Source: Botryllus schlosseri
Taxonomy: Eukaryota
Length of the DNA: 64,000 bases
Reading direction: 5' to 3'
NCBI GenBank assembly: GCA_051294905.1
Contig: CM119385.1
Span: 21,204,001-21,268,000, forward strand
Shown: piece after piece, positions 11,611 through 36,963 of the stretch
Numbering within the stretch: the stretch's first letter is position 1
Layout of the letters: each line of letters begins with the position of its first letter
Notes under the pieces: model-generated
The model's database searches: none
The model's input: only the letters and a program-made list of their open reading frames with translations
What the model was told of the DNA's origin: nothing
Made by a program: the position numbers and the translations under genes

Positions 11611-12687
11611 TCAAATGTCTTGTTGTTCGACAATTTCTTCGAAATACGACAAAATTTTATTGCGATCAAACGATCTAGCCATATCCAAAGCAGATTTGCC
11701 ATATTTGTTCTTGGCGTTGAAGTCAGCTCCACTATCCACTAACTGTTTCACTAAATCCGTGTGTGCGTTCAACGTAGCGATCATGAGAGGCGTTTTACCA
11801 TCGTTATCAGAAGCATTCACATTAGCCCCATTTTTTATGAGTGCACGTGCCATTTCAACGTTTCCAGACAGAGCGCAGCATCGTAATAGAGGAGTCCACC
11901 CTGCGGTGTTATCACGGACATTGACATCAGCACCTTCCTTTACCATCCATTCAATAAGCTCTAAATTTCCACCATCCATAGCCCAATGTATAGGATAGCT
12001 TCCACCTCGGTCTGAAGAATCCCAAGGCGTCCCAGCGATTCTCAAACATTTCACAATTTCCAAACTGCCAGCAAAGCAAGCCAACATCATGCTATTACGT
12101 CCGCTCGCGTTTTGAGCATTTACATCTGCACCATGCTCTAATAAAGTGTTGACAATATCCGGAAAATTCTTTTGGCATGCGTTCATTAGCGGAGTATAAC
12201 CAAGCTCATCGGTCACTTCTATGGATACTTCTTGAGACGCTAGAATTTCAAGGATTCGGTCAGTATTTCTTTTCATGACGGCTTTGTGCAAATGTTGGCC
12301 ATTGTAAGGCTCTTTTGTAGTGTTCACAGTTACATACGGACTGAAGAATGTGTCACCGTTGGGGTCGGTTATTTTTAATCTGTATCTGTAGTATTGTAAG
12401 GACTCCAAACCTTCCACAACATGGCTCAGTCCGTAGCCAATGTATACCGTTCCTGTGCCCTTTGTTCTTTTGTCTTCTTCCTCTATTGCAAACTTGAGCT
12501 TATCACCCGCGCTTGTACTCCATGTAGGTTTGCACCACTCCAATTCTACGCTGTGGTGCGTCACGCTCTTTACAGTTGGAGGGTCCAATTGATCAGACCT
12601 AATGGGATGATCGCGAGACGGTGTCTTTTTTGGGGGTGGACGTTCCTCGTGCGTTTGAAAGGCAGGCTTGGTTAGCCTTCGCAACAT
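11611..12687 (-). CDS. FANK1: Fibronectin type III and ankyrin repeat domain protein 1; single exon, 358 aa
   Basis: FN3 domain (VTHHSVELEW, FAIEEED, YRYRLKIT) followed by ankyrin repeats (GYTPLMNAC, GWTPLLRCCALSGN, GKTPLMIATLN); collinear with remembered vertebrate FANK1. Confidence 0.93.
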   Translation of the reverse strand: MLRRLTKPAFQTHEERPPPKKTPSRDHPIRSDQLDPPTVKSVTHHSVELEWCKPTWSTSAGDKLKFAIEEEDKRTKGTGTVYIGYGLSHVVEGLESLQYYRYRLKITDPNGDTFFSPYVTVNTTKEPYNGQHLHKAVMKRNTDRILEILASQEVSIEVTDELGYTPLMNACQKNFPDIVNTLLEHGADVNAQNASGRNSMMLACFAGSLEIVKCLRIAGTPWDSSDRGGSYPIHWAMDGGNLELIEWMVKEGADVNVRDNTAGWTPLLRCCALSGNVEMARALIKNGANVNASDNDGKTPLMIATLNAHTDLVKQLVDSGADFNAKNKYGKSALDMARSFDRNKILSYFEEIVEQQDI

Positions 12688-13572: not shown

Positions 13573-16498
13573 ATGGATAAGCCTCAAATAATTAGTCACA
13601 TTGAAAAGTCGCTGGATTTCACGCTTTTCGACTGCAAATGGATACCGCGAAGCGCCAGATTTGTCGTTCTCGGCAGTTACCCGCGAGGAACGGGAGCGTT
13701 GTTGGTGTACGAGATATCACATCGTGATATAGTTAAGATTCACGATCGTGAAACTACTAGCTCTTTGAAATGTGGAACTTTTGGAGCATCGTCTTTACAG
13801 GTAAGATTTACGACTGCACTGTATTACGTCAATGTCTAGGCAATAACGAATGAATTGGTAGGCTACATCAGTAGTACATTTTAATTTGTAACTTTGATAA
13901 TACGCACCACATGAGAATGTACAAGAGATGGTCAAAGCATCAGCATTGCTGTGAATCCTACTGAAACTTGATACGTTTTGCCTAATAAAGCAGTTGCTAG
14001 CAGCGATGATTCTCCAAGTAATTTTATAAAAATTAATAATAAAGTAAAGAATTGTGTGAGCACAGGACATTGATTGCAGGGCTGTTGCTCGAGTATAAGT
14101 AAATTTAAGCACTAACCAGTATATAAAGTACTTTAAGTTGAAGTAAAAGTCTGGAAATTTCCCAAGTAAATAATTTGGAAAAGTAGATTTGGTCCATATG
14201 TCAAATACACTACAAACAAAATAGGACAAAGTCAGTCTCATATTTTTTACATTAGGATGATTTAGTCTCATTTTCATCAATTTGACTGAGACTGTTTAGA
14301 CTGAGACTCTATAGAATTGTCATGATAATTCGGTCTTCAAAATAAGACCGTCAGTAAATGCACCTATTAGGACATTTTTCGATTTATCAGTGTTTTTGGT
14401 CTTGTTTTTGAGACAAATTTTGCTAATCAAGAAATAACCTGGTCGGTGGTCTTGAAATTGTGACCGTAATGTTGTCATGAGACAAGAAAGCTAGACATAA
14501 CTCTCTTATTGAGACAAATTTTGATGCTTCAGTTTTTTTTGGCTTGTGTTTAAGACGAATTTTGCTAGTCAAGAAACATTGAGGTCCCTGATCAGCTGAT
14601 CTTGAAAATTAGACCGGAAAGTTGTCTAAGATAACAACACAGAACACAACTAGCTTATTTACAGTGTTTGATGCTTCAGTTTGTTTTATCTTGTTTTTAT
14701 GACGGATTTTGCTAGTCTCATATACTTTTAGTATAGTGAATCAAAGGTGGGCTACTTTCGAGATTGCAATGTGAAGTGTTTCTACAACACAAAACATCTC
14801 GTGACACTAAAAATAGAGCAATAGTTTACAATATATACTGTTATCATTATGCATGGACCATTTTGTGCAGTTGTCGTCATAATTTCACTCATTAAAAGAC
14901 GCAAACCAATCTCAAAACTATTTTCAACTTCAGGAAATATATTTACAATTTTTTTAGTTTCACGTCAAAAAGTATTGAATAGAATAGCCGAAAAATATAG
15001 CCACTTTTGTAACTTGTGAAATCAGATAAACCTACTTTAGTATTGGAATATTGGTTCTTGTTTGGCAGTTCTGATCAATGAATACGGTATCGTAATTGGT
15101 GTATTACTAATTGAATGTTATATATCCTGTACTGAAACATTCTGGCTTTTGATATTCTCTCCGTACAATAACGTCATTATTGTTGCTTGTACATTCTGTA
15201 TTTAGCTAATCTTATCCAATTTATTCATTCGTTCACGAAAAAAAACTAAATTAATTTCAAACTCAAAGGGAATAATTCAAGTTGAAGCTGTTGGTCTGCA
15301 TGTGCACGCTAATCGATATTGAGCCTGTTCGGCGTCTCAAATCTTGATACAGTTTCACTCTTTGTTATTGTTTGTTATTTTTCTAACCTTTTTGAGTTAG
15401 TCTAGTTACCGTACTGTACTTGTTTCATGGATATTACATTCGCAAATATCTATAACATATCGGCCTGTGTATGACTGCAATGTTACCAGCTGCCTTGATG
15501 ATCTAATGGCCATATTGGAGGCTAACATTTCACTGAATTATTTTCTCTTATTGTCAATATACAAAGTTCTTTTCAATTCTCTGCTAGTTGCTGACGATTA
15601 CTCCTGACGAGCGTCGGCCAAGAATATTTGTGTCTATTTCAAAACGAATATATTATTATGTCTTCAGTCAAGAAACCTCGCAACTGGAGACTTCTCCGGC
15701 AAGCTCAACGTCTGGGATTTGGAGTCCATGCAGAGCACGTACACGGCGTCGGCTCATTCTCAAATAATAAACGCAATCGACGGCGTTGGCGGATTAGGAA
15801 TTGGCGAAGGAGCGCCGGAAATTGTAACAGGCAGCCGAGACGGATGTGTTAAAGTCTGGGACGTACGCCAAAAAGATGTTCCAGTTGCTAATATGGAGCC
15901 AGATGAAGGGCAAGAAGCGAGGGACTGTTGGGCGGTTGCGTTCGGTAATGCATACAATTCAGAAGAAAGATGCGTATGCGCTGGTTATGATAATGGTGAT
16001 GTAAAGTTGTTTGATCTGAGGACCATGTCGTTAAGATGGGAGACTAACATTGCTAACGGCGTGTGTGCTGTACAATTCGATCGTAAAGACATAGCAATGA
16101 ACAAATTAGTGGCTACGTCTTTAGAAGGGAAGTTTCAGGTCTTTGATGTCCGCACGCAGCATAAAACAAAAGGCTTTGCGTCCGTTTCGGAAAAAGCACA
16201 CAAGTCGACAGTGTGGCTCGCGAAACACCTTCCCCAAAACCGTGACGTCTTTATGACCACCGGGGGCTCGGGATCGCTGAATTTGTGGAAATACGAGTAT
16301 CCGGCCAAAAGGGTGAAATTGGAGGATAATGAACACGTGGGTGTGGCGGGGTCGGTTCAACTTCTGCAGAACGCGGTGATATCGACGCAGCCAATATGCG
16401 GATTTGATTGGAGTCCGGATAAACTGGGTTTGGCTGTTTGCGTCGCGTTTGATCAGTCTCTACGTGTTATTATTAATACAAAGCTAAATACATTGTGA
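13573..16498 (+). CDS. WDR92: WD repeat protein 92 / dynein axonemal assembly factor 10; two exons, 352 aa
   Basis: Exon 1 13573-13800 ([12 protein letters not shown]...[11 protein letters not shown]|gtaaga) and exon 2 15668-16498 (cag|SRNLATGDF...[15 protein letters not shown]...WSPDKLGL...TKLNTL*); phase-0 join. Confidence 0.96.
14380..14720. repeat. Degenerate tandem repeat (about 140 bp period) in the WDR92 intron
   Basis: Repeated ttttgcta(a/g)tc blocks, with gatcttgaaa and gatgcttcagttt each seen twice. Confidence 0.5.
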
Positions 16499-19847: not shown

Positions 19848-20942
19848 GTACCGACGTTATGTAGACGATACTTTTGTCATTTTCAGAAATGAGATAGACT
19901 GTGATCAATTTCTCATTCACTTAAACTCGCTTCACCCGGCTCTGTTATTCACAATTGAAAAAGAACGGAATAACTCATTGTCATTTTTGGACGTTTTAGT
20001 CGAAAAACATGATACCAATAAATTTGAAACATCAATCTTCCGGAAACCGACATTCACTGGCCAATACCTTCGTTGGAACTCATTTAGTCCTAGCCGCAGA
20101 AAAATCAACCTCATAGGCACCCTCGTGCATAGAGCGTTGATGATATGTTCTGGTAATAAACTGAACTCAGAACTTGACAATATCCGGAAAATCTTACTTG
20201 ATAACGGTTACCCTGAACATGTCATCAACCGTGGCATAGAGAGGAAAGTAACGTATTTCAATGCAGAAAAGTCAACAGAGCCTACCGAACGAACAACCAA
20301 AGATGTTTACATCCATCTACCTTGGATAGGGCCTATTTCCACCCGCTTTGAAAAGCAATTGATTTCAGCGGTCAATAAGTGTTACGACACAGTGAAGACC
20401 AACGTGATTTTCACGACAACGCAACTGCTCCCCGCAACACGTAAAGACGTGCTACCCGCACTTCAGCAAAGCAATGTAGTTTACGAATTTAAGTGCCACT
20501 GTGATTGTGGCTACGTGGGAAGAACGTCAAAGCGCTTGCAGGAACGCATAAATCAGCATGTCCCTAGATTGATTAGAACACGCTCGATGAAAAGCTCACC
20601 CTTAACTCACCCGCTCAAGATTGATGCGGACCAATCAAAGGCCATAAATTCTGCAATTGGCAAACACTTGTTGGATAATCCCGCCTGTGCGAAAAATTAT
20701 CGAGACGACAGATTTCGCATACTCGGAAAGGGTCGCTCACACTTTCATTTGTGCTCCTTGGAGTCGACTTTTATCAAAATACACCAGCCAAGGCTGTGTC
20801 AACAAAAAGAGTTCGTGTATCATCTAAAAATAGTACATTGAACGCTCTCGTATTCGACATTTCGTGCTGGTGACGTCATATTTTGTGTTACGATTGTTGA
20901 TATACGCTGTTCTTTCGAATTCTCTACTAGTTGCTGACGATT

Positions 20943-22579: not shown

Positions 22580-22642
22580 CCAATGGCTGCTTTACACGGT
22601 TAGATTTGACGTCTTGAGCGCATGCGCAGCCGGCCGCCACGT
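22580..22642 (+). promoter_or_regulatory. Candidate ER-stress / housekeeping promoter motifs upstream of PDI
   Basis: CCAAT-N9-ACACG at 22580-22598 (one mismatch to the ERSE CCAAT-N9-CCACG), TGACGTC at about 22607, GCGCATGCGC (NRF1-like) at about 22618 and CCACGT at about 22637, all within 200 bp of the ATG. Confidence 0.4.
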
Positions 22643-22771
22643 ACGAGACACGAGCACAAAACTGACGAGGATTAGCGTTACGTTCTCTTACGTTGTATTG
22701 GTGCGCTGTAGTGGAGTTGTTAGGTTCAGTATCCTTTTCATTAAGAGATTAGTAGGTTTAAATTCAAGAAA

Positions 22772-25700
22772 ATGTTTGGTTACGTTCCTGCGATCCTGAC
22801 CCTTATGGTCGTTCTTACTAGGGCTGATGAAGAAATTCAGTATGAAGACGATGTTATGGTTTTGACCGATAGCAACTTCGACTCAGCTGTTGAAAATAAC
22901 AAGTACCTGCTCGTTGAATTTTGTAAGTGTTAATTTTTTCTATAAAATTGTAGTTTTCAGCGTTCTGCCTTGCTATCTCGAGAACTGTCATACATTGTCA
23001 TCAGACAGGAACGGTCATTGCTTTTGTTAGAGATGATCTTTCGTATATAATTAGTAATTTTACGGCGCTGCTTTTGCGAGTCCTGTGACGACTATAGTTG
23101 TCAACCACTAGTGTGGATAACTTTCAAGGTTTGAAGCGGAAAAACTGGAGTATTATTCCATATGTAATGTGCTAATGGAACTTGTATAGAATATAATTAT
23201 CCACAATAGTAGAGGCCGTGTCCATCAGTTGCAATGTAAATGTGTCATCCTTCGGTCGGATTTATGTTGGTCTGGATGTGATAATCACCCTTGCCTTAAT
23301 AACGCAGGGCTATTTTAATTTTTTATGATTGCTAGACGAATCTTAAGAGTTAGAAGCGTCTTTCAACCAAGCCTCGATTAATTTTTTACAATTTATTTAC
23401 AATGACTGTATTTGCATACTACATTTTTAAGACAAAATACATAGTGATTGATGTAACTGAAATTATACCAATTCTCTACGCACGACGTAGGTTTCATGAA
23501 GCTCAATGCATAGGCTACATTATTAGTCGAGGATGTATCCCAGCTCTTGAATCTTTGAAATTGACACCGTACTAATGATTTTTCAAACCCACGCATGTAC
23601 ATTGTACAGCTATAAACGCGTTGGCATGTGCAATGTTGCAATAACTTTTAGGTTAAGCCTTCGTACTGCTCGTTTGTTCTGCAACCTAATGCTGGAACTG
23701 TTATAGAGAAACCAGAATGTTAGGCACACCGAATTGTGTCATTTTGCAATGCCAAGAGTGGGCACACTTAATGATTAAGCCATATTGCCCTAACAAATCG
23801 TACACTTGCCCAGCTTTTTGATCGCTAATCTAATGATGATACCTGCAAAAAGTTTAGCAGATTTTGTGTTAATTAGGCATTAAACAATTGCTGGTATTCA
23901 GATATATAGAACTTCAATATACAATTGGCTAATAACTATTAGTTGCTGACGATTACCACTGAATGCCGAAAATATCGCGGTTCATTTTATTATGGATATC
24001 TTGATGTACATTGCTGTAGGGTTGTCCTGATAACTTTACACGATGGCACTGTGACTGAAAGTTTAGATTTATGTGCGAAAGTTACACCACTTATCTACGA
24101 TTAGAGACACTTAGGAGTACAGAACATCATAACACATTTGAATAAAATATTCATATTTATTCCCGAAGCTGGTCGGCTGACCCTTGTCAGGGGATATCGT
24201 CAGCAGTATTGCGAGAATTCGAATAACTATGTTCAACAACAATATATATCGCTAATTATGACGTCACACAGAAATATACGATTGTATTCATACCGTATCA
24301 TGTAATTGAACATCATCTCTGGGGCGTGCGAATGCGGCAAATTTTTTCAAGATATTTTGCACTTGTCAGTTACAAGTTGACACACGTGACATTCTCCAAT
24401 AGTTTTGGAAATGAAGTGATCATAATTTCTTATATTCGTTGAATTGTCATGGTCTATTACTGTTTTCTAGGTACCTTATGTTCAATTACCGGTAACCTAC
24501 TATAGTATAGGGGTTTGTCACATGGTTCTTATGCTGATTTCATTCGTAGGTGTTATGATATAAGCTTATCGCAAAGCTATTTTCTACTTCCATTGAGATA
24601 AATTGTAAAATGTAGAAGTAGGCCTAGAAGAAGAATTATTCCAAAAACATAGGCCTGTCCAATTTGGCATTGGCAACATTGACAAAATAGATGTACCGTC
24701 GTGACCCTTGTTTATGATATAGCCTATAGGCTACTTTCAGAACCGTTGTTATAACAAAGTATAGGGTGGCTGTAAATTCAGTTCCTGATTAGTCTCAGAA
24801 TTGATTTGAATCGTTAGTTCTATTGATGATTAGATGCCCCATGGTGCGGACACTGCAAAGCCTTGGCACCCGAGTATGCAAAGGCCGCAGGACAGCTTAA
24901 AGAAGATGGGTCGGAATCAAAGCTAGGCAAAGTTGACGCTACAGTGCAACAAAAACTGGCATCGAAATATAAAGTACAAGGATATCCAACCCTTAAATTT
25001 TTCAAGAACGGAGTCCCTCTTGAATACCAAGGTATGTGTTATCTTCTGAATAAACTAACATGATCCTTTCCACTATAGATTCGGATTGGTGTGAGCATTG
25101 TCCCGAACTGACAAAGGTACTTGTTGGCTTGGCTAAGCAATTCAAGAATGAAAATCATAATGTGACGATTGCCAAAATGAATGGCGGTATTCATAATGAA
25201 ACCGTGGAGAGAGTGAAGCTAGCCGGGTATCCCACTCTCCTGCTATTCCGAAAAGACAGAGTGTGGGAATTTATGGGCAAGAAATGTGTTCATACACTGT
25301 AGCGCAGTGCATGTTGGGAATTTCGAGTGTGAGAGGTCAAAGGATTACCTGGTGTTGATAGTTTGCAGTAGTGTACCCATGGTGTAAAATTGAATAGATT
25401 CTGTCTGATGTATTATGATCAGTTTATATTTTTCTATCGCTGATATTCTGGTTGCCGCATGCTGTGTGAGCTAGCATTGCCAACACCTATCAAACTAAGT
25501 GAGGGTTGTTGTGTTAAAAGTTATTCGTTTCGTACATCCAAACTTGTGCAGACTACTGGATTTTCAGAATGTGAAAGTAGGACTAGAACTACTGACTTTT
25601 CAAAACTCGCAACTAAAACTAGAACCAGCGACCTTTGAAAATCTGCAACTAAATAACTAAAACACTTTTAACGAGATTCAATTCTAAACCAACTTGAAAA

Positions 25701-28700
25701 TTATTATTCATTCGGAATCTGTGTGACTTTGTTGCAAATTAGCTAGGAAATATTGGCGATAGGGTGTGTAGTTAAAAATGGGAGCGCTTTTGACCCACAA
25801 AAGCCACCCCCTCACTACGCCACTGTTGGTAGTGATGATTCTCAGCTAGCAATGGCTGCAACTGACATTTTATGAATATGTTATTAGAACTAAAACTACC
25901 CCGTTTTAAATACCAAAACTAAAACTACTCAAAAATCCACTAGTTAGTTGACCGTCAACTAAATATATGGTAACGTGGTAGTTTGTACGAGTCTGAACAC
26001 GTACCTTATGGTTGGGTTGGTGTTTTAGGTGAAATATCATCAAGTTCTGTCAGAAAACATCCCCTAATTTAGGCTTGAAGTCTCGTACGATATCAAGTGT
26101 TTTGAGAGGCTCTCGTAGCTACTTTTGGTGTTCGCTTGTGTGCCGGGTTGAGGGTCTTCGTTATATGGTGGAATGTTTGCAATATGTTTGTATACAGGAG
26201 GAAGAACTGCAAGCGAAATTGTCAACTGGCTTGCCAAGAAAACTGGACCTCCTTCGAAGGAAATCGCGACCAAAGAGGATGCGGACAAATACATCGCTTC
26301 CGCTGATGTTGTTGTCCTTGCCTACTTTGTGAGTATGCTCTAAGCATCTCTGCTCAAACTGCTGGATTTTCAAAATGTGCAACCTTTTCAAAACTCGCGG
26401 CTAGAACTAGGACTAACTTCCTTTGAAGATACACAATCGACTAACTAAAAGCAGAACTAACTGTTATTCGATTACAATGCAACTCGTTCGGGTGGGATGT
26501 TGGAGATGGAATCAAGGCTTCGAGTTTTGAATCGAACTACCCTGAACCCCACCCATGGCTACGTCAATGTCTGCAAGAACATCACACAATAGAACACCTT
26601 TATCAATATTCTCTAATGTTCTCTAGTTGGTTAGAAACTAAATTTTTTTGAATGTGCAAATGGAACTCGAACTACTCACTTTTCAAAATCCACAATCAGA
26701 ACTAGACGTAGCCTACTCAAAAACCAGTAGTTAGGTGACCGTCAATTGCCAAGATTGGTCGTTTGTGCAAGTCTGCAAATATTGTTGTTTGCGTCTGATT
26801 TCATGTCTAACACTGCTTTCCAGAGTGGTGAATCTGAGGAACAGAAAATGTATTTGGAAGTTGCGGATTCCGTAGACGACGTGTCGTTTGCGCATATCAC
26901 AGATGCTGGCGTAGCCGGAGAAGTCGGCATTAAGGATAACCAAATAGTTGTTTTCAAGAAGGTAAGTTTTACGCATACTTCCGTCCAGAGGTGTTCATTA
27001 ACGTAGTACTCCAGTACGTTTTGCAAACTTTGACCGCTGAATAATGAAGTATGGACTGTTAAGTTGACGCGACAACATTATAGCGATCGTTTGATTAACA
27101 TAAATCTGCTTAATAAATGAGTTGGCCTCGTGAATAGGTTTTAAAGATAACATGGCTATAGACCTGGAGTACTAAATTTTTAATTGCTTTGAATCGCTAC
27201 TTCTGCAGTTCTGCTTGAGTGTAAATTTTCGGCATTATTTCTACTTCTACTCGATTACCAATGGTAACTACTTCAACCACCCCATGTTCCAGTCTGGTCC
27301 ATCTTATTTTACCCAATTAACTTCTTTTAATTAACTTGCTTGTATCACTCTGTGCCGATCTAAGGAGGAGGCCGGTAATTGTACTTTTGCCGGAAATGGC
27401 ACTGACCACGGTCAATTGGAGTCGTGGGTCCTAGACCGGACTTGGTTGTTCATGCAAGAGCTTTGCGAAGAGGTATTTTATGGTCTGGATTGGGTAATAG
27501 CGGGGCGTGGGGTTTGTAGGTGTGTGCGGTCTACGGTTTATCCAGTGCTCGAAATATAGCGGTACTGTTGGGTTTTAGCGGTAATGGTATCGCATGCTTT
27601 TTTTGAAGTTTGACGAAGAACGTGTAGATTTCGAAGGCGAAGCGAGCGCCGATGCGATCCGCGATTTCGTGAAAGGAAACCAGCTTCCGTTGGTTAGCGA
27701 ATTCACGCAAGAGGTGAGTGTGACGTCACATTTAAAACGAAACGAACGGAATTTCTATCTCACGAGTACAAGGCATCGGATCAAGCGACGTTTCCCAGAT
27801 AGGGTATATTGTGGATGGAGTGTGGCGTGCGGTTTTAGAAGCTTAGCTTTTTAGGAGTGGGTGCTGCATAAATTCATAAATGTCGGTGTGTAACTTATCC
27901 ACGTTGCTAGATAGTGCTTTAGGGTAGAGAGCTTCAATATACAATTAAAAATAAATACAGGCGGGGGGGCATAAAAAACGTTTAGTCAACTACATTTCAT
28001 TAACTGTTTGGTGCAAAGTTCAATGTGAAAAGAATCTTGAGAGGTACAGAAATTTATATACATTTTATACAATTGAATATGTTCATTAAAATATATTCGT
28101 ATATCTGGTAATCGTCAGGAATCGGTAGAGGATTGAAAAGAACATTGTATGTCATTAATATCACCAATCGTATGAATCATATTTGGTGAGATGATTGTTG
28201 TTATACAATGTTCTTTTCAATTCTCTCCTGATTACCCCTACCGAGTGTCGGCCGATGATATTATGGTTTATTTCAATTTGAATCTATAACTCTTGTACAT
28301 ACCTAATCGGATTAATCGAAATTCCTCTCCAACTTAGTTTAAAGCCCGTGGATTGGTCGCGCATCGAGAAATATGGTGTTGGGTGTATCGCTTTGTTTGC
28401 CGGTGATTGATGTGTTGTTTCGTTCGCAGTCTGCTGCCAAGATCTTCGGCGGAACCATCACGACGCACAACTTGCTGTTCATCAAGAAATCCGACAGCGC
28501 ATTCCAGCAGACGTACGACGATTTCAAGAAGGCCGCCGCCGAATTCAAGGGCAAGGTATTATATATAGTCAACTGGATGCTTCTGATTAGGGCCCGGCAG
28601 TTTTTGAGTCGATAACGATAATGCATGAAATAATTTGCACCTTCGCCAATAACCTTCAGCCGCAATTCGAATTCTATGACATCTAGCTTAAGACTAATTT

Positions 28701-31700
28701 TCAATACTATGTGGAGAGTGGAGCGTTCATTTGAACAGCTTTAGAACCATTACTGTGGTTGGACGTAAACGAGATCATTTCTTGTCCATGTACATTAGGG
28801 GTGTTCAAAAATGACTTTTTTTCTCAAATTGTACTGGCTACTTGATGAAATTGTTAGGTTACCAAATTTAAGCCTACACCCCCAATTTGGTTCAATTCCA
28901 GCGAGTAGCCGCATTGCTACAGGAGAAGAAAGTTTCTATTTATTATTTAAAAATAAATAAACAAAAATTTCAGTTCACCCCATGAAAGTGTTAGGTTGTC
29001 TATAGAAACGATGGTTGGAATTGAACATTCCAACCAGTGGAAGCGGAGTTATTGCCGTCGAAAAATTTGGATTATCAATAAAATAGTATTTACGGTGACC
29101 AATTCTTTAATTATTTGTTAGTTGTGCCCACCGTAAATACTATTTTATTCACATCCAAATTTTTCGACGGCAATAACTCCGCTCTCACTGGTTGGAATTG
29201 AGCCAAATTTGGTGAACATCGTTTCTATAGACAATTTAACCCTTTCATGGGGTGAACAGAAAATTTTGAAATTTTTGTCCATTCATTTTTATGTAATAAA
29301 TAAAAACTTTCTTCTCCTGTAGCAAGGCGGCTACTGGCTGGAATTGAACCAAATTTGGTGTGTAGGCTTAAATTAGGTTACCCAACAATTTTATCAAGTA
29401 GCCAGTAAAATTTGAGAAAAAAAGTCATTTTTCAACGCCCCTAATGCACATTTCCTAATTGTGAGCTACTCAATCGCAGGTCCTGTTCATTTACATCGAC
29501 GGCGACAACGCCGAGAACGAGCGGGTCATGGAATTCTTCGGGCTGACGGCCGCCGACTGCCCGGACTACAGGATCATAAAGATGGACGAGGACATGGCCA
29601 AGTACAAGCCGGAGACCAAGGCGCTAGACGCCGAGTCTGTGATCGACTTCACCGGGAAGGTTCTCGACGGGAAAGCGTCGGTGAGTGTTGGCTGTATGGC
29701 GACGGTTTTGATTTAAATTGAATTAGGATCAGAATGATAGCTACACTTTTTTTCTGAATTAGATTTAAATTAGAATTATGGCTACAGTTTTTTTTTCAAA
29801 TATAGAATTATAGCTGCGGTTTTCTTTTCAAAGTTAGATAACAATAAGAATTGTCACTAGTTTTTTTCGAAATCAGATTATAATTAGATTTATAGCTGCT
29901 GTTTTCCCGAAGTGGGTTAGCATTACTGAATTCGCAAAATCTTGGAAATTGAATTCAACTCCGAATTAGGAAGAGATACGACAAAATAATGTTGAATTTG
30001 TATCAAATCAGAGTTCGTTGTCCTAAACATGTACATCGAGCTTGGCTCGTTTCGTACTTTACAGTTCTGGAAAACCACAAATTAGATTGGACAGAACATA
30101 AAAATATCTCGCAAATTAGGATTAGAGATTGATTACCGACATTTTGCTCTGCGAAGGGTTATTGAGATTTTTTTTCAACTTTCCAGCGTCACTTGAACTC
30201 GGAAGACATTCCTGAGGATTGGAATAAGAACCCGGTTTGTGTGCTTGTCGGAAAGAACTTCAAAGAAGTCGCTTTTGATGCCAAGAAGAAAGTCTTTGTT
30301 GAATTTTGTAAGTAGAGTCAACCGGTTTTGTCCCGTTTCGTCGGTTGCCAGTGAACTCGGCCCATAATCCTAAACCCGGCGCTTCTTAACCTGTACTAAC
30401 CTAACCCGAATTTACAGAACAAAACCATTAAAACATGATTTTCACACAAAACGAAATGATGATGAATATTCACTGCAAATCAGTACGACTTGTGCTGTAT
30501 GAGTCAGATATGTATCTTGATCGCCAGCAAACCCAGTTGAGAACCACCGTCCTAACTCTAGCCCAAATACATGAATACAGCAGGGTTGTAATGACTCGAG
30601 TCACGATTTTCTGATGACTCTACTTGACTCGAGTCATTTTTTCAAAATACGGAAATGATTCAATCTGTGTATTGACTCGACTTGGACTCGAGTCATTGCG
30701 CATGACTCTATCCAAGTCATGCGACTCGAGACTCAGACGGCCAAGACCGACATTTCATTGTGATTTTGAAGGATAGTAAAGTAACCTCACTATTGGGATT
30801 TAGCCTATTGGCACTGGTACTTGAAAATGCGACCAGAAACTGCTAAAAGTGAGGAAAATGAGTATATTATAAATGCGAACCATTCGATACCACCAGAGTT
30901 ATGAAAATTGGGTTTTAACGAGACTTTTACTGGACACTGAGCAGTCGATACAATGACTTAGACTCGGACTCGAGTCAAAATACCATGTCTTGAACTCGAC
31001 CCTCTGCTCGGTGACTTGGACTCGGACTTGACTTGAGTCAAAACTATAAAAGTGAGATTGACTTGCGACTCGCAGCCGTGGCCCTTGGTTACCACCCTGT
31101 AATATGTTAAACATACCAAGTGCCATGTATCCAGTGAAACGTTCATTTGCAAGTCTATCAATACAATATTTATGCATCTCTTTCATAATAATAATAATTG
31201 TTACATTTCAAATGACAAATTCACAAAGTGCCGTCTATCACAATCCGCTCTCATATTCAGTGAAACATTGATTTATTAATACAATATAGATGCACCGTTT
31301 TCATCACAATAATAGTTATTACAATTCTAATGACAAATTCATGATCATATTCAGTGAAACATTCATTTTTATTAATACACATTGATGCATTGTCTTCATA
31401 AGGATAGTAGGCTAATTACATTCATATTGTCAAGTTCACTGGTAACTATTTCGCCGTCTGCGACTAAAACGTATCAATTCCGTGTCACAAAGCTAGGCAC
31501 AATTCTAGTGGTTCTTATTCACTTGAAATCTCACCCGGCTAATCCGCTTTAAATCTGTGGGCTTTATAAGATATGGCTTGGGTTAGTTATTGGTGTCTCC
31601 AGATGCTCCGTGGTGCGAACACAGCACGCGCTTAGCGCCGACATGGGAGGCTCTAGCTGGGAAAATGAAGGATAGGACGGATCTGGTTATCGCCAGAATA

Positions 31701-34700
31701 GACGGCTCGAAAAATGATGTGTCCGACGTTCACGTCGTCGCGTTCCCGACGCTGCTGTATTTTCCGAAGTCAAAAAAGCCAAAAGTGAGGGTGATGATCG
31801 TAGACCTTCAATCATCATGCCTGCTTACATCATGACCTCATTTATCGCCGGTAGTTGTTTTTGCGGTCGGGAGACATACGAGCATGCGACACTTAGCATG
31901 TGTGTTCAATTTTTTATTTGATTTGCTCTAAATCTGTTGGGCATGATTATAATCAAGGCATGAGGTTCTGAATCGCAAGTCATTGTTACTTTTTTGATCA
32001 AATTTTACTTGATTAAATTGTTCGGTTGCCTTGAAAAATGGTTCACACCAATTTTGGCTCAATTCCAACCTTTGGAAGTATTGCAGTATGAAAAAAGTTT
32101 TATTTTTTCAATAAAAATAAATATAAATTTTTTTTATATTTCACTGGTTTCCTCGTGAAATTGTTACGTTGTCTGAGCAAACGATGCACAACAAATTTGG
32201 CTCAATTCCAACCAGTAGAAGCGAAGTTATCGATGTTTAAAATTTAGGATTTCAAATCATAGTATTTGCGGCGCGTAGATCTATAATAAATAAAGAAATT
32301 TGCCACCATGAATATCATTTTTTTGAAATCCAAAATTTCGCACTCCGATAACTTGCTTTCTACTGGTTGGAATCGGGCCAAATTTGTTGCGCATTGTTTT
32401 TCGGAGAATCTAACAACTTCATGGGGTACCCAATAAAATATGGAAAAAAATTTGATCATTTTTATGAATCCAAAACCTTTTTCATATATAGCAATGATAA
32501 GTTGGAATTGAACCAAAAGTGAGGTCCAGCGTTTTTTTTTAGACAACTTGACAGCAATTTTTTCAAGTTTTATCGAGTCAATGTGCAATGACTGTAGTAG
32601 AAGCCTAGTTCATACACAAAGTGTCTAAAGTTGAGTCATTTTCCGTCCCTGGTGATCTGAAATCACCTGCGGTTAGGGTAGGGGTGAGAACATATATACG
32701 GGTTCAGAGTTACTGTTTGGGTTAGTTTTGGAGTTATAAAGTCACATGCTAAAATGCCGCGTGCTCTAATGTCGGGCGACCGTACTTAGCGACGTAGAAT
32801 AATACGAGCAGTGATTATTTGCGTCGGCCGTTGTCATGTAGTTGCCACGTTGTTGCTTTAGACGCGCCATGGTGCGGGCATTGCAAACAACTCGCCCCGA
32901 TCTGGGACAAGCTTGGAGAGCACTACAAGGACAACGACGATATCGTTATCGCCAAGATGGACTCTACCGCCAACGAGGTGGAAGAAGTCAAAGTGACTGG
33001 TTTCCCGACGTTGAAATATTTCCCCGGCGGTGAAGATAATGTAAGGAGAGAGTTGTTTGCATGCACGTGTTTTTCTTGCTAGATTGTAGCGCCGGAATGT
33101 GTATACTGTAGTCAGCATTGCTACTCGTGTAGAAGTGGGGCTGTAAATTTCTTGTCATTTACACTTGGAAATAGTAAATTGAGCAGCTTCTATACAATTG
33201 AATAGTATATTCATATTGAAATGAACACGAATATTTTCGGCTGACACTCGTGACGCTCGGTGAAAATCTCGAGATTGATGCGGAACAATCAAAGGACATA
33301 ACTTCTGCAGTTGGCAAACACTTGTTGGATAATCCAGCCTGTGTGAAAAATTATTGAGACCACAGATTTTTCGTCGTCGGAAGGGGGCCGCCACACTTTT
33401 ATTTGTGTGCCTTGGAGTCGACTTTTATCAAAATACACCAGCCAAGGCTGTGCCAACAAAAAGAGTTTGTGTACCACCTAAAAATAGTACATTGAACGCT
33501 CTCTCATTCGAAATTTCATGCTTGTGACGCCATATTTTGTGATACGATTGTTGATATACAATGTGCTTTCCAATTCTCTATACTAGTTGCTGACGATTAC
33601 CCCTGACGAGTGTCAGCCGAAAATATTTGGGTTCGTTTCAATCTGAGTATGCTATTCAATCAAATAGTAAATTCTAAGACATGTCCAAACTATTTGGAGT
33701 GTTGCTACTTGAGTAACGCCTTGAATTTCTGCTTAATGACAGACAGAAATAATAAATTCCAAGACCTGTCCGAACTGCTTTGATTGTTGGTGCTTGGGCA
33801 GAAGTAGAAGTAACGTCTTAAATTTCTATTTGATTACAAATAGAAAGTGATATTCGAGACTTAGCAAGCTCAGCGACAGGTGAAAATTACCCGGAGCAGT
33901 AGAAATAATGCACTTTTTCTTGACCATGACCGCCGACTCGTGTGCTTGTGAATTCTTGAAACTTTAATTTCATTTCTAATTTTTCCCAGGTAATTGATTA
34001 CAATGGCGAGAGGACGCTGGAAGCCATGATCAAGTTTATCGATTCTGACGGCAAAGAAGTAAGTGGCGAGGAAGAAGATGAAGACGTAGATGAGGTGTGT
34101 AGTGGTAGATGTGATATTTCGACTTCAACTAGGGTTGGACACAATGATACGGGTAAAATGGAGTGTTGATTGTAATGATGCAGATTGAGAAGTGAGAGAT
34201 TATCTCTTACAGTGCTGAAATTACAAGCTAATTGCTACTAAGAGTTCATTTATCAACTACATTTATAGTTCCGATACTATTTTCCACTGAAAGTCTTATA
34301 GACTATGATTGGTCGTATCGCAAATGGCATGTATGTGAAGCTAGTGACAAACCCACAACATTGTCGCAAAGTGTAATGAAATAAGGTATGGTCAGTAATA
34401 TACAAAATAATCTTTAATTTGATGTGGAATTGGCACTATATTCTCTGTGGTTGCGTAAATGGTACATTTTCAACTTTACACATCATTCGTGAGGTCATGA
34501 TTACTGGTACTGGAATACTGTTCATTGCGGTGCAGATGATTTGGAAAGTTGTGACGTGTACCTTGGATACACCACGTTGAAACTTTTCTGAACAATTTCG
34601 TTGTTGAGCGTGGGGCTTGGTCACGTCTTCACAGAATGCCACGTGTTTTGGATGGCGTGATCTGGCCAATTGAGATTTCAAGTTTTCAGTGATTGTCGAA

Positions 34701-36963
34701 AAGTATCAAAACTATAATTCCAGCACTCGAAAATTTACTTGACGGAAACTTTGTTGTTGATACGGCTGATCGAGATTTCAAGGCTTCCACAATGGGAAAA
34801 AACATTAAAACTATAATTTCAGCACTCGAAGATATCATGTTGCCAGTGTTTGATTCGAATCACTACAATAAATACTCAGAACTCGAATCACTGTGACCAG
34901 CCTTAGACCTAACCCTGTTGTCGCCAATTGATTCTCAAAAAGGCCTCCCACTCTCGAGTGGTATAAATCCTATGCTCGGGCAGGCTTAGTCGCGGGTCCT
35001 TTTTTCCTGCGAGAAGTCGAGGTATGGTCGGTGATTTTAGACCGTTGGGGTAGTAGAATGTCGTAGTCGAACCTCCCAAATGTTCTTGCATGTTATTGAA
35101 TTTGGAAGGTTACAAAATTGTACTTTTGTACACCTACTTTGTAGTACGGAGCCTAGGTTTTTGTGTGGTAGCCGCCAAATCGTTCAGACTCTTGGCGGGT
35201 TGTGAAACTAGCGGTTGTCTTGCAATGCGCACAGTAGCGGTGACGGTATACAGCTTGAAGTGTGGAGGAAACGGAAGAAAAGAACTGATAGACATCTCAG
35301 AATGCGCACGGTAGTCGTGATAGGTATGCGGTTGGAAGTGTGGAGAATGTTTGTAGAAACGGGAAGGGAAAGTGTGTTGTAAGGTGGGGGGGAATATTGG
35401 TGCTGTAGGATGGGAGACGTATGAAATTATGGAAAGAGTACGTTTAGATTGTTCCCATGAAAGATGGCGCCGCGCCTGGCATGTGCCTGCCGGGAGGGGC
35501 CGCGTATTTTGACAACCATCACGACGACGCCGACACGTTTCACATCGCCGACATGAACCTGCCCAAAGCAGAGTTGTTGTCTGATTCTGCGGGTGTGGGG
35601 ACGGAAGAAAAAGCGTCTAATAATGCCGGTAGTTCTGCCGAGAACGTGCAAGGGAAGGCTACGGCCGGCGTGGTAATTGGTGTGAAGTGAATAGGTTGAC
35701 AGGTTTCGTTGGCGTTGCATGGTTAGCGAGTACTAGCGAGACTCTCAGGGGTGCAGATCTTCAATATACAATTGAATAATATATTTGAATCGGCTGTCAC
35801 TTGTAAGGGGTAATCATCAGCAACTAGGAGAGAATTGGAAAACAAAACTGCTTATTGAAGATTTGAATCGATTTTTACCCGATAAATGCTGGTAACGTCA
35901 TTTTGGCGGTACAGGCCTTCAAAAAGCCAGCGTATACTTGATCCGAACGAATCGAATTTCGAAAATATCCTACTCTAAATAGGTGCAGAACTAAAGTACA
36001 ATGGAATATTCAATCCTCTCCTAGTGGCTGACGGATAACCCGTGATGAGTGTTGACCGAAAAGTTTCAGGTGCATTTCGGTACGAATATACTATTCAGTT
36101 GTTTAGCAGGTACTGTTTTCCTATATGCGAAGGGGTGGTGTAAATGTGTGCAGTGGGCATGCGAGATTTGCAATGTGTATTGCTGAATATCACGTTGTTT
36201 TTAAAGGACGGTGCCGACTATGTAGCTGAAAAACCAGGCCAAGGGGTGGGAGATGAGAGTAGCAAGGATGGCGAATCGAAGAAAGCTGCGTCTGCGACAG
36301 ATAAAGCAGAGGCAGGCCCTGTGGGCAGAGATGAGCTATAGGTTGCCGTACTTATGACCGTTACGAGCTTTGATATTTGAAACAGTAGAGATCACACGAG
36401 GAAAATGCTAGTCCCTGTATAAGTGCAATTTTAGCCCATTTGAAAGTTCCAAGTATGGAAATGTGCATCTGTTGCCGTGCTCACAAGAAAATCATGCCAG
36501 TTATGCATCACCGGAATTAGTTTCAATGTATCTAAACCAAAATGATATCCGAGACCGAGAGGTCGTGATCAACCCACAACATTGTCACAAAGTGTCACGG
36601 AATGATACACAACTGGCATTATATTTTTGTCGTCGCATGTAAGGTACATATTCAACTTTCCGTATCAGTCACACTGCTATGGCGCCGTAATGAATGACAC
36701 TCGAATATATCATGTACTCGATTTTGCTCAGCCCTATTGCTGATCCATATTCCCGAGAAGTAATGGCCCTGATGTTTGCGAGATCCCTGACTTCGTGTCT
36801 GACATTGCATTGATACCTGACAACTTCGTGCATGGGAAATGACCGCGTGTAAAGTGTTTGCTTATAAACGCGATCCCTTGTTCAGGAGGAAATTGACGAG
36901 GAAGACGAAGACCAAGAGCAGGAAGAAGAGGAATCTCACGCGGACGCGAAAGACGAATTATAA
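22772..36963 (+). CDS. P4HB: Protein disulfide isomerase (P4HB/PDIA1 type), canonical isoform 510 aa ending in KDEL
   Basis: Exons 22772-22922 (signal peptide...VEF), 24834-25031 (YAPWCGHCK), 26198-26328, 26824-26961, 27609-27713, 28430-28555, 29480-29680, 30187-30307, 32862-33040 (YAPWCGHCK), 33990-34094, 36886-36963 (...ADAKDEL*). Total 1533 nt with all phases consistent; a-b-b'-a'-c architecture. Confidence 0.96.
25079..25276 (+). CDS. Alternative PDI a-domain exon (2b) with WCEHC motif
   Basis: Open frame (Y)[65 protein letters not shown](G); 198 nt, the same length and phase as exon 24834-25031; ctatag acceptor and GC-type donor G|gcaaga. Confidence 0.8.
25539..25995. mobile_element. 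MITE family D; second copy at 26345-26775 on the other side of PDI exon 3
   Basis: Inverted termini caaacttgtgcagactac / gtagtttgtacgagtctg and shared ttttcaaaa(c/t)...aactagaac subrepeats. Confidence 0.6.
28796..29443. mobile_element. Nearly fully palindromic hAT MITE (family A) in a PDI intron
   Basis: taggggtgttcaaaaatgac ... gtcatttttcaacgccccta; left half is the reverse complement of the right half; 8 bp flanks atgtacat / atgcacat. Confidence 0.9.
30581..31099. mobile_element. MITE family B copy in a PDI intron
   Basis: cagggttgtaatgactcgag ... ttggttaccaccctg; collinear with 8049-8628. Confidence 0.8.
31603..31784 (+). CDS. Alternative PDI a'-domain exon (9a) with WCEHS (CxxS) motif
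   Basis: Open frame (Y)[60 protein letters not shown]; ctccag acceptor and gtgagg donor; 182 nt with the same phase 1 to phase 0 boundaries as the canonical 179 nt exon 32862-33040. Confidence 0.85.
33181..33661 (+). mobile_element. Short Penelope derivative with inverted arms in a PDI intron
   Basis: 12 bp direct repeat aaatagtaaatt (33169-33180 and 33662-33673); decayed GIY-YIG C-terminus ([17 protein letters not shown]...[27 protein letters not shown]) plus terminal repeat. Confidence 0.9.
35448..35672 (+). CDS. Candidate alternative PDI exon (75 codons) preceding the RDEL exon
   Basis: tttag|[40 protein letters not shown]...GKATAGV|gtaatt; phase 0-0 and GC-rich coding-like composition, but the polypyrimidine tract is weak. 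Confidence 0.6.
36207..36341 (+). CDS. Alternative PDI terminal exon ending in RDEL
   Basis: gttgtttttaaag|[44 protein letters not shown]; phase 0, with an ER-retention tetrapeptide directly before the stop. Confidence 0.8.
   Translation, partial: DGADYVAEKPGQGVGDESSKDGESKKAASATDKAEAGPVGRDEL

Follow-up and report, generated by a model that had tools for sequence, protein, structure and literature searches.

The protein disulfide isomerase (PDI) gene described here, of the P4HB type and from the tunicate Botryllus schlosseri, contains two homologous versions of the exon that encodes the active site of its first catalytic domain. It lies on the plus strand, at about 22.7–37 kb, of a 64,000-nt stretch of contig CM119385.1 (assembly GCA_051294905.1, positions 21,204,001 to 21,268,000), hereafter called the window, to which all coordinates refer unless another locus is named. 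The two versions, exons 2a and 2b, are very probably a real, conserved and functional alternative pair. Exon 2a, with the motif CGHC, is the default choice; exon 2b, with CEHC here and CVHC or CGPC elsewhere, is a minor form that makes up about 2–3% or less in the samples seen. Only 47 nt separate the two exons, and exon 2b ends at a GC donor. The explanation of exon choice that we favour, at a probability of roughly two in three, combines a steric block set by the short spacer, a donor weakened by its GC dinucleotide and a putative Rbfox-type enhancer downstream of it.

The exon pair and its transcripts

The product of the gene has the a-b-b'-a' architecture, the two WCGHC thioredoxin domains and the endoplasmic reticulum (ER) retention tail of a P4HB-type PDI, and the spliced model of 486 residues contains no stop. 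Exon 2a (24834–25031, plus strand) and exon 2b (25079–25276, plus strand) are both 198 nt long and both of phase 1, and one frame only is open, the same in each. The first encodes APWCGHCK...GYPTLKFF...EYQ, that is, the WCGHC active site, the helix and the cis-proline loop of the a domain; the second encodes SDWCEHCP...GYPTLLLF...EFM, with a WCEHC active site and two sequons (NVT and NET), of which exon 2a has none. They are identical at 17 of 65 residues and 80 of 198 bases. Both match the Pfam Thioredoxin family over its positions 27–83, exon 2a with 73.3 bits and exon 2b with 38.5 bits, and the 2b sequence also matches PDI-family chains in the PDB. Since both exons exceed the Thioredoxin cut-off (23.5 bits), exon 2b is a genuine diverged duplicate of exon 2a and no chance open reading frame (ORF). 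Homology, shared phase, similar length and correspondence to the same structural segment, all found in this pair, are the marks of a tandem exon duplication.

The spacer (25032–25078, plus strand) runs from GTATGT, the donor of exon 2a, to ATAG, the acceptor of exon 2b, and its 47 nt are the only region beside exon 2b available for a branch point and a pyrimidine tract. A branch-point-like CTAAC at 25055–25059 is a candidate; its A, at 25058, has the G of the 2a donor 26 nt away on one side and the 2b acceptor 20 nt away on the other. Exon 2b is followed by a GC donor, G|GCAAGA (25277..25282). Two exons of 198 nt keep the frame when joined, and double inclusion would be invisible to nonsense-mediated mRNA decay (NMD), as an initial annotation, made from the letters of this stretch, had correctly pointed out. 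That annotation had also placed both exons, the spacer and the CTAAC motif exactly, and its GC donor and the confinement of the sequons to exon 2b are confirmed here.

RNA was placed on positions 22600–28599 from four runs, namely raw reads of bulk RNA-seq (X23) and three transcriptome assemblies (X1, X2 and X5), and splice junctions were listed at a threshold of 1%. Transcripts of the gene start at 22685–22690, as judged from loose ends that carry the template-switch adaptor. Exon 1 (22685..22922, plus strand) comprises the 5' untranslated region, the ATG at 22772, the signal peptide and the start of the a domain, and ends in GAATTTT|GTAAGT; it is joined to exon 2a (22922>24834) in all four runs and to exon 2b (22922>25079) in two of them. 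The acceptor common to exons 2a and 2b is that of exon 3 (26198..26328, plus strand), which starts with GAGGAAG, and the junction 25031>26198 is present in X23, X1 and X2. In the raw reads the default path is represented by 106 reads across 22922>24834 and 94 across 25031>26198. The RNA-supported introns of the gene in the window measure 1911, 1166, 495, 647 and 716 nt, and its constitutive junctions are all of the GT..AG type and well supported.

Contigs of two different studies, X2 and X5, carry the junction of exon 1 with exon 2b, which has GT..AG borders. In k-mer depth, the 2b form stands at 7.6 against 289 for the 2a form in X2 (2.6%) and at 17.7 against 737 in X5 (2.4%), and X23 holds no read across this junction versus 106 for exon 2a, which sets an upper 95% bound of 2.8%. 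The 2b contig of X2, 231 nt long, begins with 25 nt of exon 1, continues through 25079–25277 and ends in 7 letters that diverge from the genome. A match that reaches 25277 and then departs is what is expected of a junction with exon 3, because exon 3 starts with G, and the contig end fits use of the GC donor in a 25276|26198 junction. X5 contains two alleles of exon 2b that differ at seven sites, six of them at codon position 3 (P = 0.007) and five of them synonymous.

The initial annotation had expected reads across 25031>25079, which would join the two exons, to be absent. None is among the junctions listed in the four runs at the 1% threshold, although exon 2b is so rare that the power of this result is small. 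The junction 22922>26198, which would skip both exons, is likewise missing from the junctions listed in the four runs. Of fourteen small assemblies presumed to be RNA, nine hold about 0.44 of the sampled words, equivalent to one exon, and five hold 0.71–0.98. The share of 0.98 in X1 reflects low-depth intronic coverage, from pre-mRNA or DNA, and is evidence neither way.

Diversity in the X23 reads over 22600–28599 is very high: about one exon site in 30 is variable, at frequencies of about 30–60%, and the variable sites in exon 2a are nearly all synonymous. Some X23 reads end loosely before 24834; their consensus, of low agreement (0.66), matches exon 1 over the last ~15 nt only. An allele that has diverged, another first exon or a paralogue could be their source.

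Conservation of the pair and a second pair in the same gene

Related loci were sought by a protein search with exon 2b, by an exhaustive search of representatives, and then by an ORF search with exon 7 and retrieval of the contigs. Six loci have the pair: the window and L001 to L005, with L005 and L006 counted as one. The protein searches for full-length isoforms carrying exon 2b returned only two genomic ORF fragments, P0001 and P0016. P0001, from a genomic contig of another species, is 66% identical to exon 2b and reads WCEHC; with a spacer of 47 nt, its start would coincide exactly with the GTG of a GTATGTG donor, which is only suggestive. P0016 was added by the exhaustive search, and its contig is L001. 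The next-best single-domain matches to exon 2b were generic thioredoxin domains at about 45 bits. One further protein, P0093 (WCVHC...WCESC), was considered as a 2b-bearing isoform and set aside as unrelated, being only 28% identical overall.

L001 is syntenic with the window, with EFTUD2, an ankyrin gene and a WD40 gene followed by the PDI gene. Its exons 2a and 2b are each 198 nt long, its spacer is exactly 47 nt and its 2b donor reads G|GCAAGAAG. A CTAAT stands at offset 24–28 of the spacer, the same offset as CTAAC in the window, while the two spacers agree at 21 of 47 positions, essentially the splice signals and CTAAY. Intron 1, in comparison, is 155 nt long in L001 and 1911 nt in the window. 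Exon 2a is 88% identical between the two loci, with a ratio of nonsynonymous to synonymous substitution rates (dN/dS) of 0.075. Exon 2b is 63% identical, and since its dS is saturated, codon-position counts were used in place of dN/dS: 39 of 62 differences fall at codon position 3 (P = 2e-6). Exon 2b is under purifying selection, because differences concentrate at the third codon position in the interspecific as well as the allelic comparison. Folded with 20 nt on either side, the spacer forms no unusual RNA structure relative to shuffled sequences in the window (z = +0.6), and the signal is weak in L001 (z = -1.9).

The remaining four loci are more divergent PDI copies, 59–65% identical in exon 7, from sources that include metagenomes, one of them of TARA Oceans; they are probably from tunicates. 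In all four exon 2b is 204 nt long. The spacer measures 48 nt in L002 and L003, 50 nt in L004 and 40 nt in L005, and the active site reads WCGPC in L004 and WCVHC in the other three. Exon 2a has 198 nt in six of six loci, and the sum of both exons is always a multiple of three, such that double inclusion would be in frame everywhere. The 2b ORF is open in all seven known sequences, with both cysteines and the cis-proline loop kept. A more distant, compact PDI gene from a marine metagenome (L008, 5077–6593; 31% GC), in which exons 2–6 are fused in one ORF, has neither the alternative exon of the a domain nor that of the a' domain; it could be an outgroup or a case of secondary loss.

Introns of the gene copies were modelled by homology, and in every locus the spacer is the shortest interval of the PDI gene. 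The other PDI introns measure 495–1911 nt in the window; 58, 62, 64, 113 and 155 nt and longer in L001; at least 237 nt in L002, at least 425 nt in L003 and at least 441 nt in L004; and 46, 51, 52, 69 and 100 nt and longer in L005. Across the six loci, then, a spacer of 40–50 nt contrasts with introns of 46–5382 nt. These comparisons support selection or constraint on spacer length: both the length and the GC donor appear to be selected, because six of six loci keep them amid a scrambled spacer sequence and other introns whose lengths differ by a factor of about 100. Short introns elsewhere in the window were given as 61–68 nt in the initial annotation. This could be checked in part: the EFTUD2 introns at 1140–1204 (65 nt) and 2458–2525 (68 nt) on the minus strand, placed by homology with L001, agree with it, whereas the introns of the PDI gene itself are far longer. 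Both EFTUD2 short introns have 63 nt in L001. About nine homology-inferred short introns, sampled from the window genome and its nearest relative, span 58–68 nt and are thus at least 11 nt longer than the spacer. One of the 63-nt EFTUD2 introns of L001 (reverse strand, ~741–803) appears, by homology only, to have a GC donor as well; it would start with GCATGT, and the corresponding letters in the window are GTCGGC. An ab initio scan of the window and the other loci for introns that bridge ORFs gave about as many matches on reversed as on real sequence and was abandoned.

The donor of exon 2b reads G|GCAAG(A/C) in six of six loci, with A as the last letter in L002's and L004's copies (G|GCAAGA) and C in those of L003 and L005 (G|GCAAGC); the C at +2 is always kept, together with the consensus AAG at +3 to +5. 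Less than 1% of donors are of the GC type, which is weak and occurs preferentially at alternative exons (PMC2490688). The acceptor of the default exon 2a is non-consensus in the six loci, being TAG or AAG followed by A (24831–24833 in the window, 9712–9714 in L001), and 2a donors depart from GTAAGT (GTATGT, GTAATG, GTAATT and GTAGGA); 2b acceptors are YAG (TAG or CAG). Weak sites on both exons suggest a finely balanced choice.

A TGCATG, UGCAUG in the RNA, stands on the plus strand at 25308–25313, 32 nt downstream of the 2b donor. The same hexamer follows that donor by 36 nt in L001 (10193–10198), by 18 nt in L002 and by 14 nt in both L003 and L004. It is the sole hexamer common to more than three loci within the 44-nt stretch after the donor, and in 5000 random draws from the same loci no hexamer was common to five (0/5000). 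Its conservation at this place suggests a regulator. Rbfox proteins bound downstream of an exon promote its inclusion. Their canonical site is (U)GCAUG (10.1101/2025.08.16.670673). We would put a link between Rbfox and exon 2b, read from motif and position, at about even odds.

A second alternative pair occurs in the a' domain of the same gene, at 31603–31784 and 32862–33040 in the window (plus strand; alternative WCEHS versus canonical WCGHC) and at 12337–12518 and 12651–12832 in L001. The alternative motif is WCEHS in these two loci, WCKHS in L002, WCIHS in L004 and WCKFC in L005; no alternative a' exon was found in L003. The exons measure 182 or 185 nt versus 179 or 182 nt, and a transcript with both would be out of frame; the spacer of this pair measures 1077, 132, 573, 1653 and 90 nt in the five loci. 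An in-frame pair with a short, fixed spacer beside an out-of-frame pair with a free one fits the logic of NMD: the steric argument predicts a hard block where double inclusion is out of the reach of NMD and nowhere else, and the contrast between the two pairs matches that prediction. GCAUG pentamers occur 63–174 nt downstream of the alternative a' exon in the window, L001 and L004, and the full hexamer is absent there.

In a tree built without constraint the 204-nt 2b exons group with exon 2a (98/100), and the 198-nt CEHC exons are drawn towards the alternative a' exons (95/99), a placement that carries a warning of long-branch attraction. A single clade of all 2b exons was not rejected by the approximately unbiased test (p = 0.10). 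Position, spacer and donor favour orthology of the 2b exons, and partial sequence exchange between the 198-nt CEHC exons and the WCEHS exon is conceivable.

Other features of the region were noted in passing. Alternative C-terminal exons lie at 34090–36960, among them an ORF ending in RDEL (~36144–36338) and one with an acidic tail and KDEL (~36868–36960); their counterparts in L001 include an ORF ending in ...KEEL (~13971–14168). ORFs of Penelope-like retroelements, with a GIY-YIG end, are found on the plus strand at 19978–20841, upstream of the PDI gene, and at 33220–33500, inside it and after the a' exon, with the same tail in both places.

Mechanism and alternatives

In the mechanism that we propose, U1 bound to the 2a donor and U2 bound to the branch point of exon 2b, with only about 26 nt between them, could not assemble productively together, and each transcript would be committed to either 2a>3 or 1>2b. 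Such a block would be needed because double inclusion, being in frame, would escape NMD. The GC donor would be intrinsically weak despite the consensus AAG at +3 to +5, and would hold exon 2b as the minority choice. The UGCAUG, 14–36 nt downstream of that donor, sits where Rbfox-type proteins would be predicted to enhance inclusion, and exon 2b would probably be switched on in particular cells; a weak donor, with the aid of an enhancer active in certain cells, would make this exon a regulated minor choice. Steric exclusion is well supported but not proven.

Two proposals of the initial annotation can be judged on this footing. That a mechanism like that of alpha-tropomyosin operates here is strengthened by the spacer length kept in six loci and by the lack of a 2a>2b junction among those listed, while the sub-minimal character of 47 nt and the place of the branch point are still what we infer. 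That the weak GC donor makes exon 2b the regulated minor choice stands as far as its minor share (~2.5%) and the donor kept in six of six loci are concerned; the regulation itself is a prediction.

Several points weigh against the combined explanation. The branch point is a candidate by sequence, and the junction of exon 2b with exon 3 is deduced from the end of a contig. The missing 2a>2b junction has low power, given that exon 2b is rare, that X23 is nearly without 2b reads and that contigs drop rare forms. That 47 nt is too short is argued from the nine or so homology-inferred introns of 58–68 nt. Counts of strong-signal short introns, taken with IUPAC patterns over the 495-Mb genome, gave 9 versus 15 in the control for 33–83 nt and 5 versus 9 for 58–68 nt, hence no excess; such introns are too rare to profile by pattern counts. 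In Oikopleura the median intron is 48–51 bp (PMC8008620), which makes introns of such size removable in one tunicate lineage, and the lower limit of intron length is lineage-dependent. The margin is small in L005, where a spacer of 40 nt compares with a shortest intron of 46 nt. The same locus is without UGCAUG in the 44-nt stretch after the 2b donor, and the Fox-1_C domain, when looked for in the genome, had no match, a result made uninformative by control genomes that were equally blank.

The most serious competitor accepts an exclusive pair and attributes exclusion to competition between splice sites, to trans-acting regulators such as Rbfox or to the order of intron removal, with a spacer that could in principle be spliced; its shortness would then come from tight coupling of the 2a donor to the 2b acceptor or be a relic of the tandem duplication. 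Introns of ~47 nt are indeed spliced in some tunicate lineages and L005 has introns of 46–52 nt beside its 40-nt spacer, the spacer offers CTAAC and YAG besides a good donor, and the conserved UGCAUG points to factor-dependent control. A relic, however, would drift, and in four lineages the spacer stays at 47–50 nt with scrambled sequence while every other intron of the gene has 200–5000 nt. The a' pair, which is out of frame and policed by NMD, has a free spacer of 90–1653 nt, and the spacer of the 2a/2b pair is shorter than every short intron sampled in the same or the nearest genome. On this evidence we consider exclusion by non-steric means unlikely.

Strict exclusivity could also be given up, with double inclusion tolerated at a low level or its product cleared by ER quality control. 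Poor sensitivity leaves room for this, as 2b RNA is rare and contigs omit rare variants, but no 2a>2b junction was listed in the four runs at the 1% threshold and the 2b contigs of X2 and X5 both connect directly to exon 1, and we hold such leakage to be quite improbable. Still harder to believe is that exon 2b is a decaying pseudo-exon and its rare junctions with exon 1 splicing noise. Its share of ~2.5% in two runs and of zero among 106 junction reads of a third would suit noise, and its protein sequence evolves about three times faster than that of exon 2a (63% versus 88% identity to L001). A decaying exon would not be expected to remain open in seven sequences across deep divergence with its differences concentrated at codon position 3, nor to keep its cysteines, cis-proline loop, acceptor, GC donor and downstream UGCAUG together with a Pfam Thioredoxin score above the cut-off. 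The combination of steric block, GC-weakened donor and putative Rbfox-type enhancer accordingly remains the reading that we prefer.

Relation to known systems and possible role

The closest analogue is the pair of exons 9 and 10 in the Caenorhabditis elegans gene let-2, which encodes alpha2(IV) collagen. These exons are homologous, 108 and 111 nt long, and separated by 30 nt that were never seen spliced, in a species whose minimum intron is ~40 nt (PMC4165533). The GC donor of let-2 intron 10 is conserved and essential to regulation, and its change to GT deregulates exon choice (PMC2490688); the pattern of splicing has been retained across great evolutionary distances (PMC4165533, PMC2490688, PMC1500816). 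All five C. elegans clusters with spacers too short to be spliced consist of exons of 3n length. The PDI pair shares with let-2 the homologous 3n exons, the short spacer and the GC donor after the downstream exon, but it concerns a catalytic thioredoxin exon rather than a collagen repeat, and in a different phylum. Both let-2 exons are major forms at different life stages, whereas PDI exon 2b is a minor form in each of the samples seen. In let-2 the regulator is ASD-2, bound downstream of exon 10; the conserved downstream element of the PDI pair is UGCAUG.

In the classic case of steric interference, exons 2 and 3 of alpha-tropomyosin, the downstream branch point is too near the upstream donor for a spliceosome to form, which prevents the joining of both exons (PMC4165533, PMC5740500); the PDI pair would follow the same principle. 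There, however, the intron is long, the branch point is unusually far from the acceptor and no GC donor is involved, while in the PDI gene the whole intron is short; the default choice in alpha-tropomyosin is set by the strength of the pyrimidine tract and by repressors. Among human clusters of mutually exclusive exons, 57 of 629 (9%) have a donor-to-branch distance below 50 bp and hence potential steric interference (Hatje et al. 2017, PMC5740500). The PDI pair, with its candidate branch point, would fall under the same criterion, although the human cases are predictions made with branch-point software and are not reported to include P4HB. A limited literature search found no description of mutually exclusive exons in a PDI gene. 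The mechanism itself is known; the gene and its payload, the exchange of the CXXC-bearing exon of a PDI, seem to be undescribed.

In thioredoxin-fold enzymes the redox potential is set by the pair of residues that lies between the cysteines. Replacement of CGHC by CEHC, CVHC or CGPC should, by analogy, change the redox potential of the a domain for that reason. Vertebrates diversify CXXC, as CXXS, SXXC and other motifs, on the PDI scaffold of paralogues such as PDIA2, PDILT, ERp44 and others, that is, in separate genes; here one exon is swapped per catalytic domain within a single gene. We offer, tentatively and with rather more doubt than confidence, the broader idea that tunicates have kept a programmable PDI, probably since before their main lineages split. 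In it the CXXC exon of each catalytic domain could be exchanged: CGHC would give way to CEHC, CVHC or CGPC in the a domain, and to CEHS, CKHS, CIHS or CKFC in the a' domain. For the in-frame pair the exchange would be fixed by a weak GC donor and a spacer below the minimum, and a conserved site of the Rbfox type would make the choice cell-specific.

If this is true, splicing would do in tunicates what duplication of PDI genes does in vertebrates, and particular tissues would have an ER oxidoreductase with a different redox poise. The gene itself offers an unusually clean natural experiment, in which the in-frame pair keeps a spacer of 40–50 nt and a GC donor across divergent genomes and the out-of-frame spacer drifts between 90 and 1653 nt. 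Spacer length, a change of GC to GT and the UGCAUG site also make it a compact system for testing the rules of splicing in a short-intron chordate. The active-site motif of an essential ER folding enzyme is exchangeable by splicing, and if the minor isoform proves to be tissue-specific with a different redox potential, it may provide a handle on how oxidative folding is tuned in the specialised secretory cells of tunicates.

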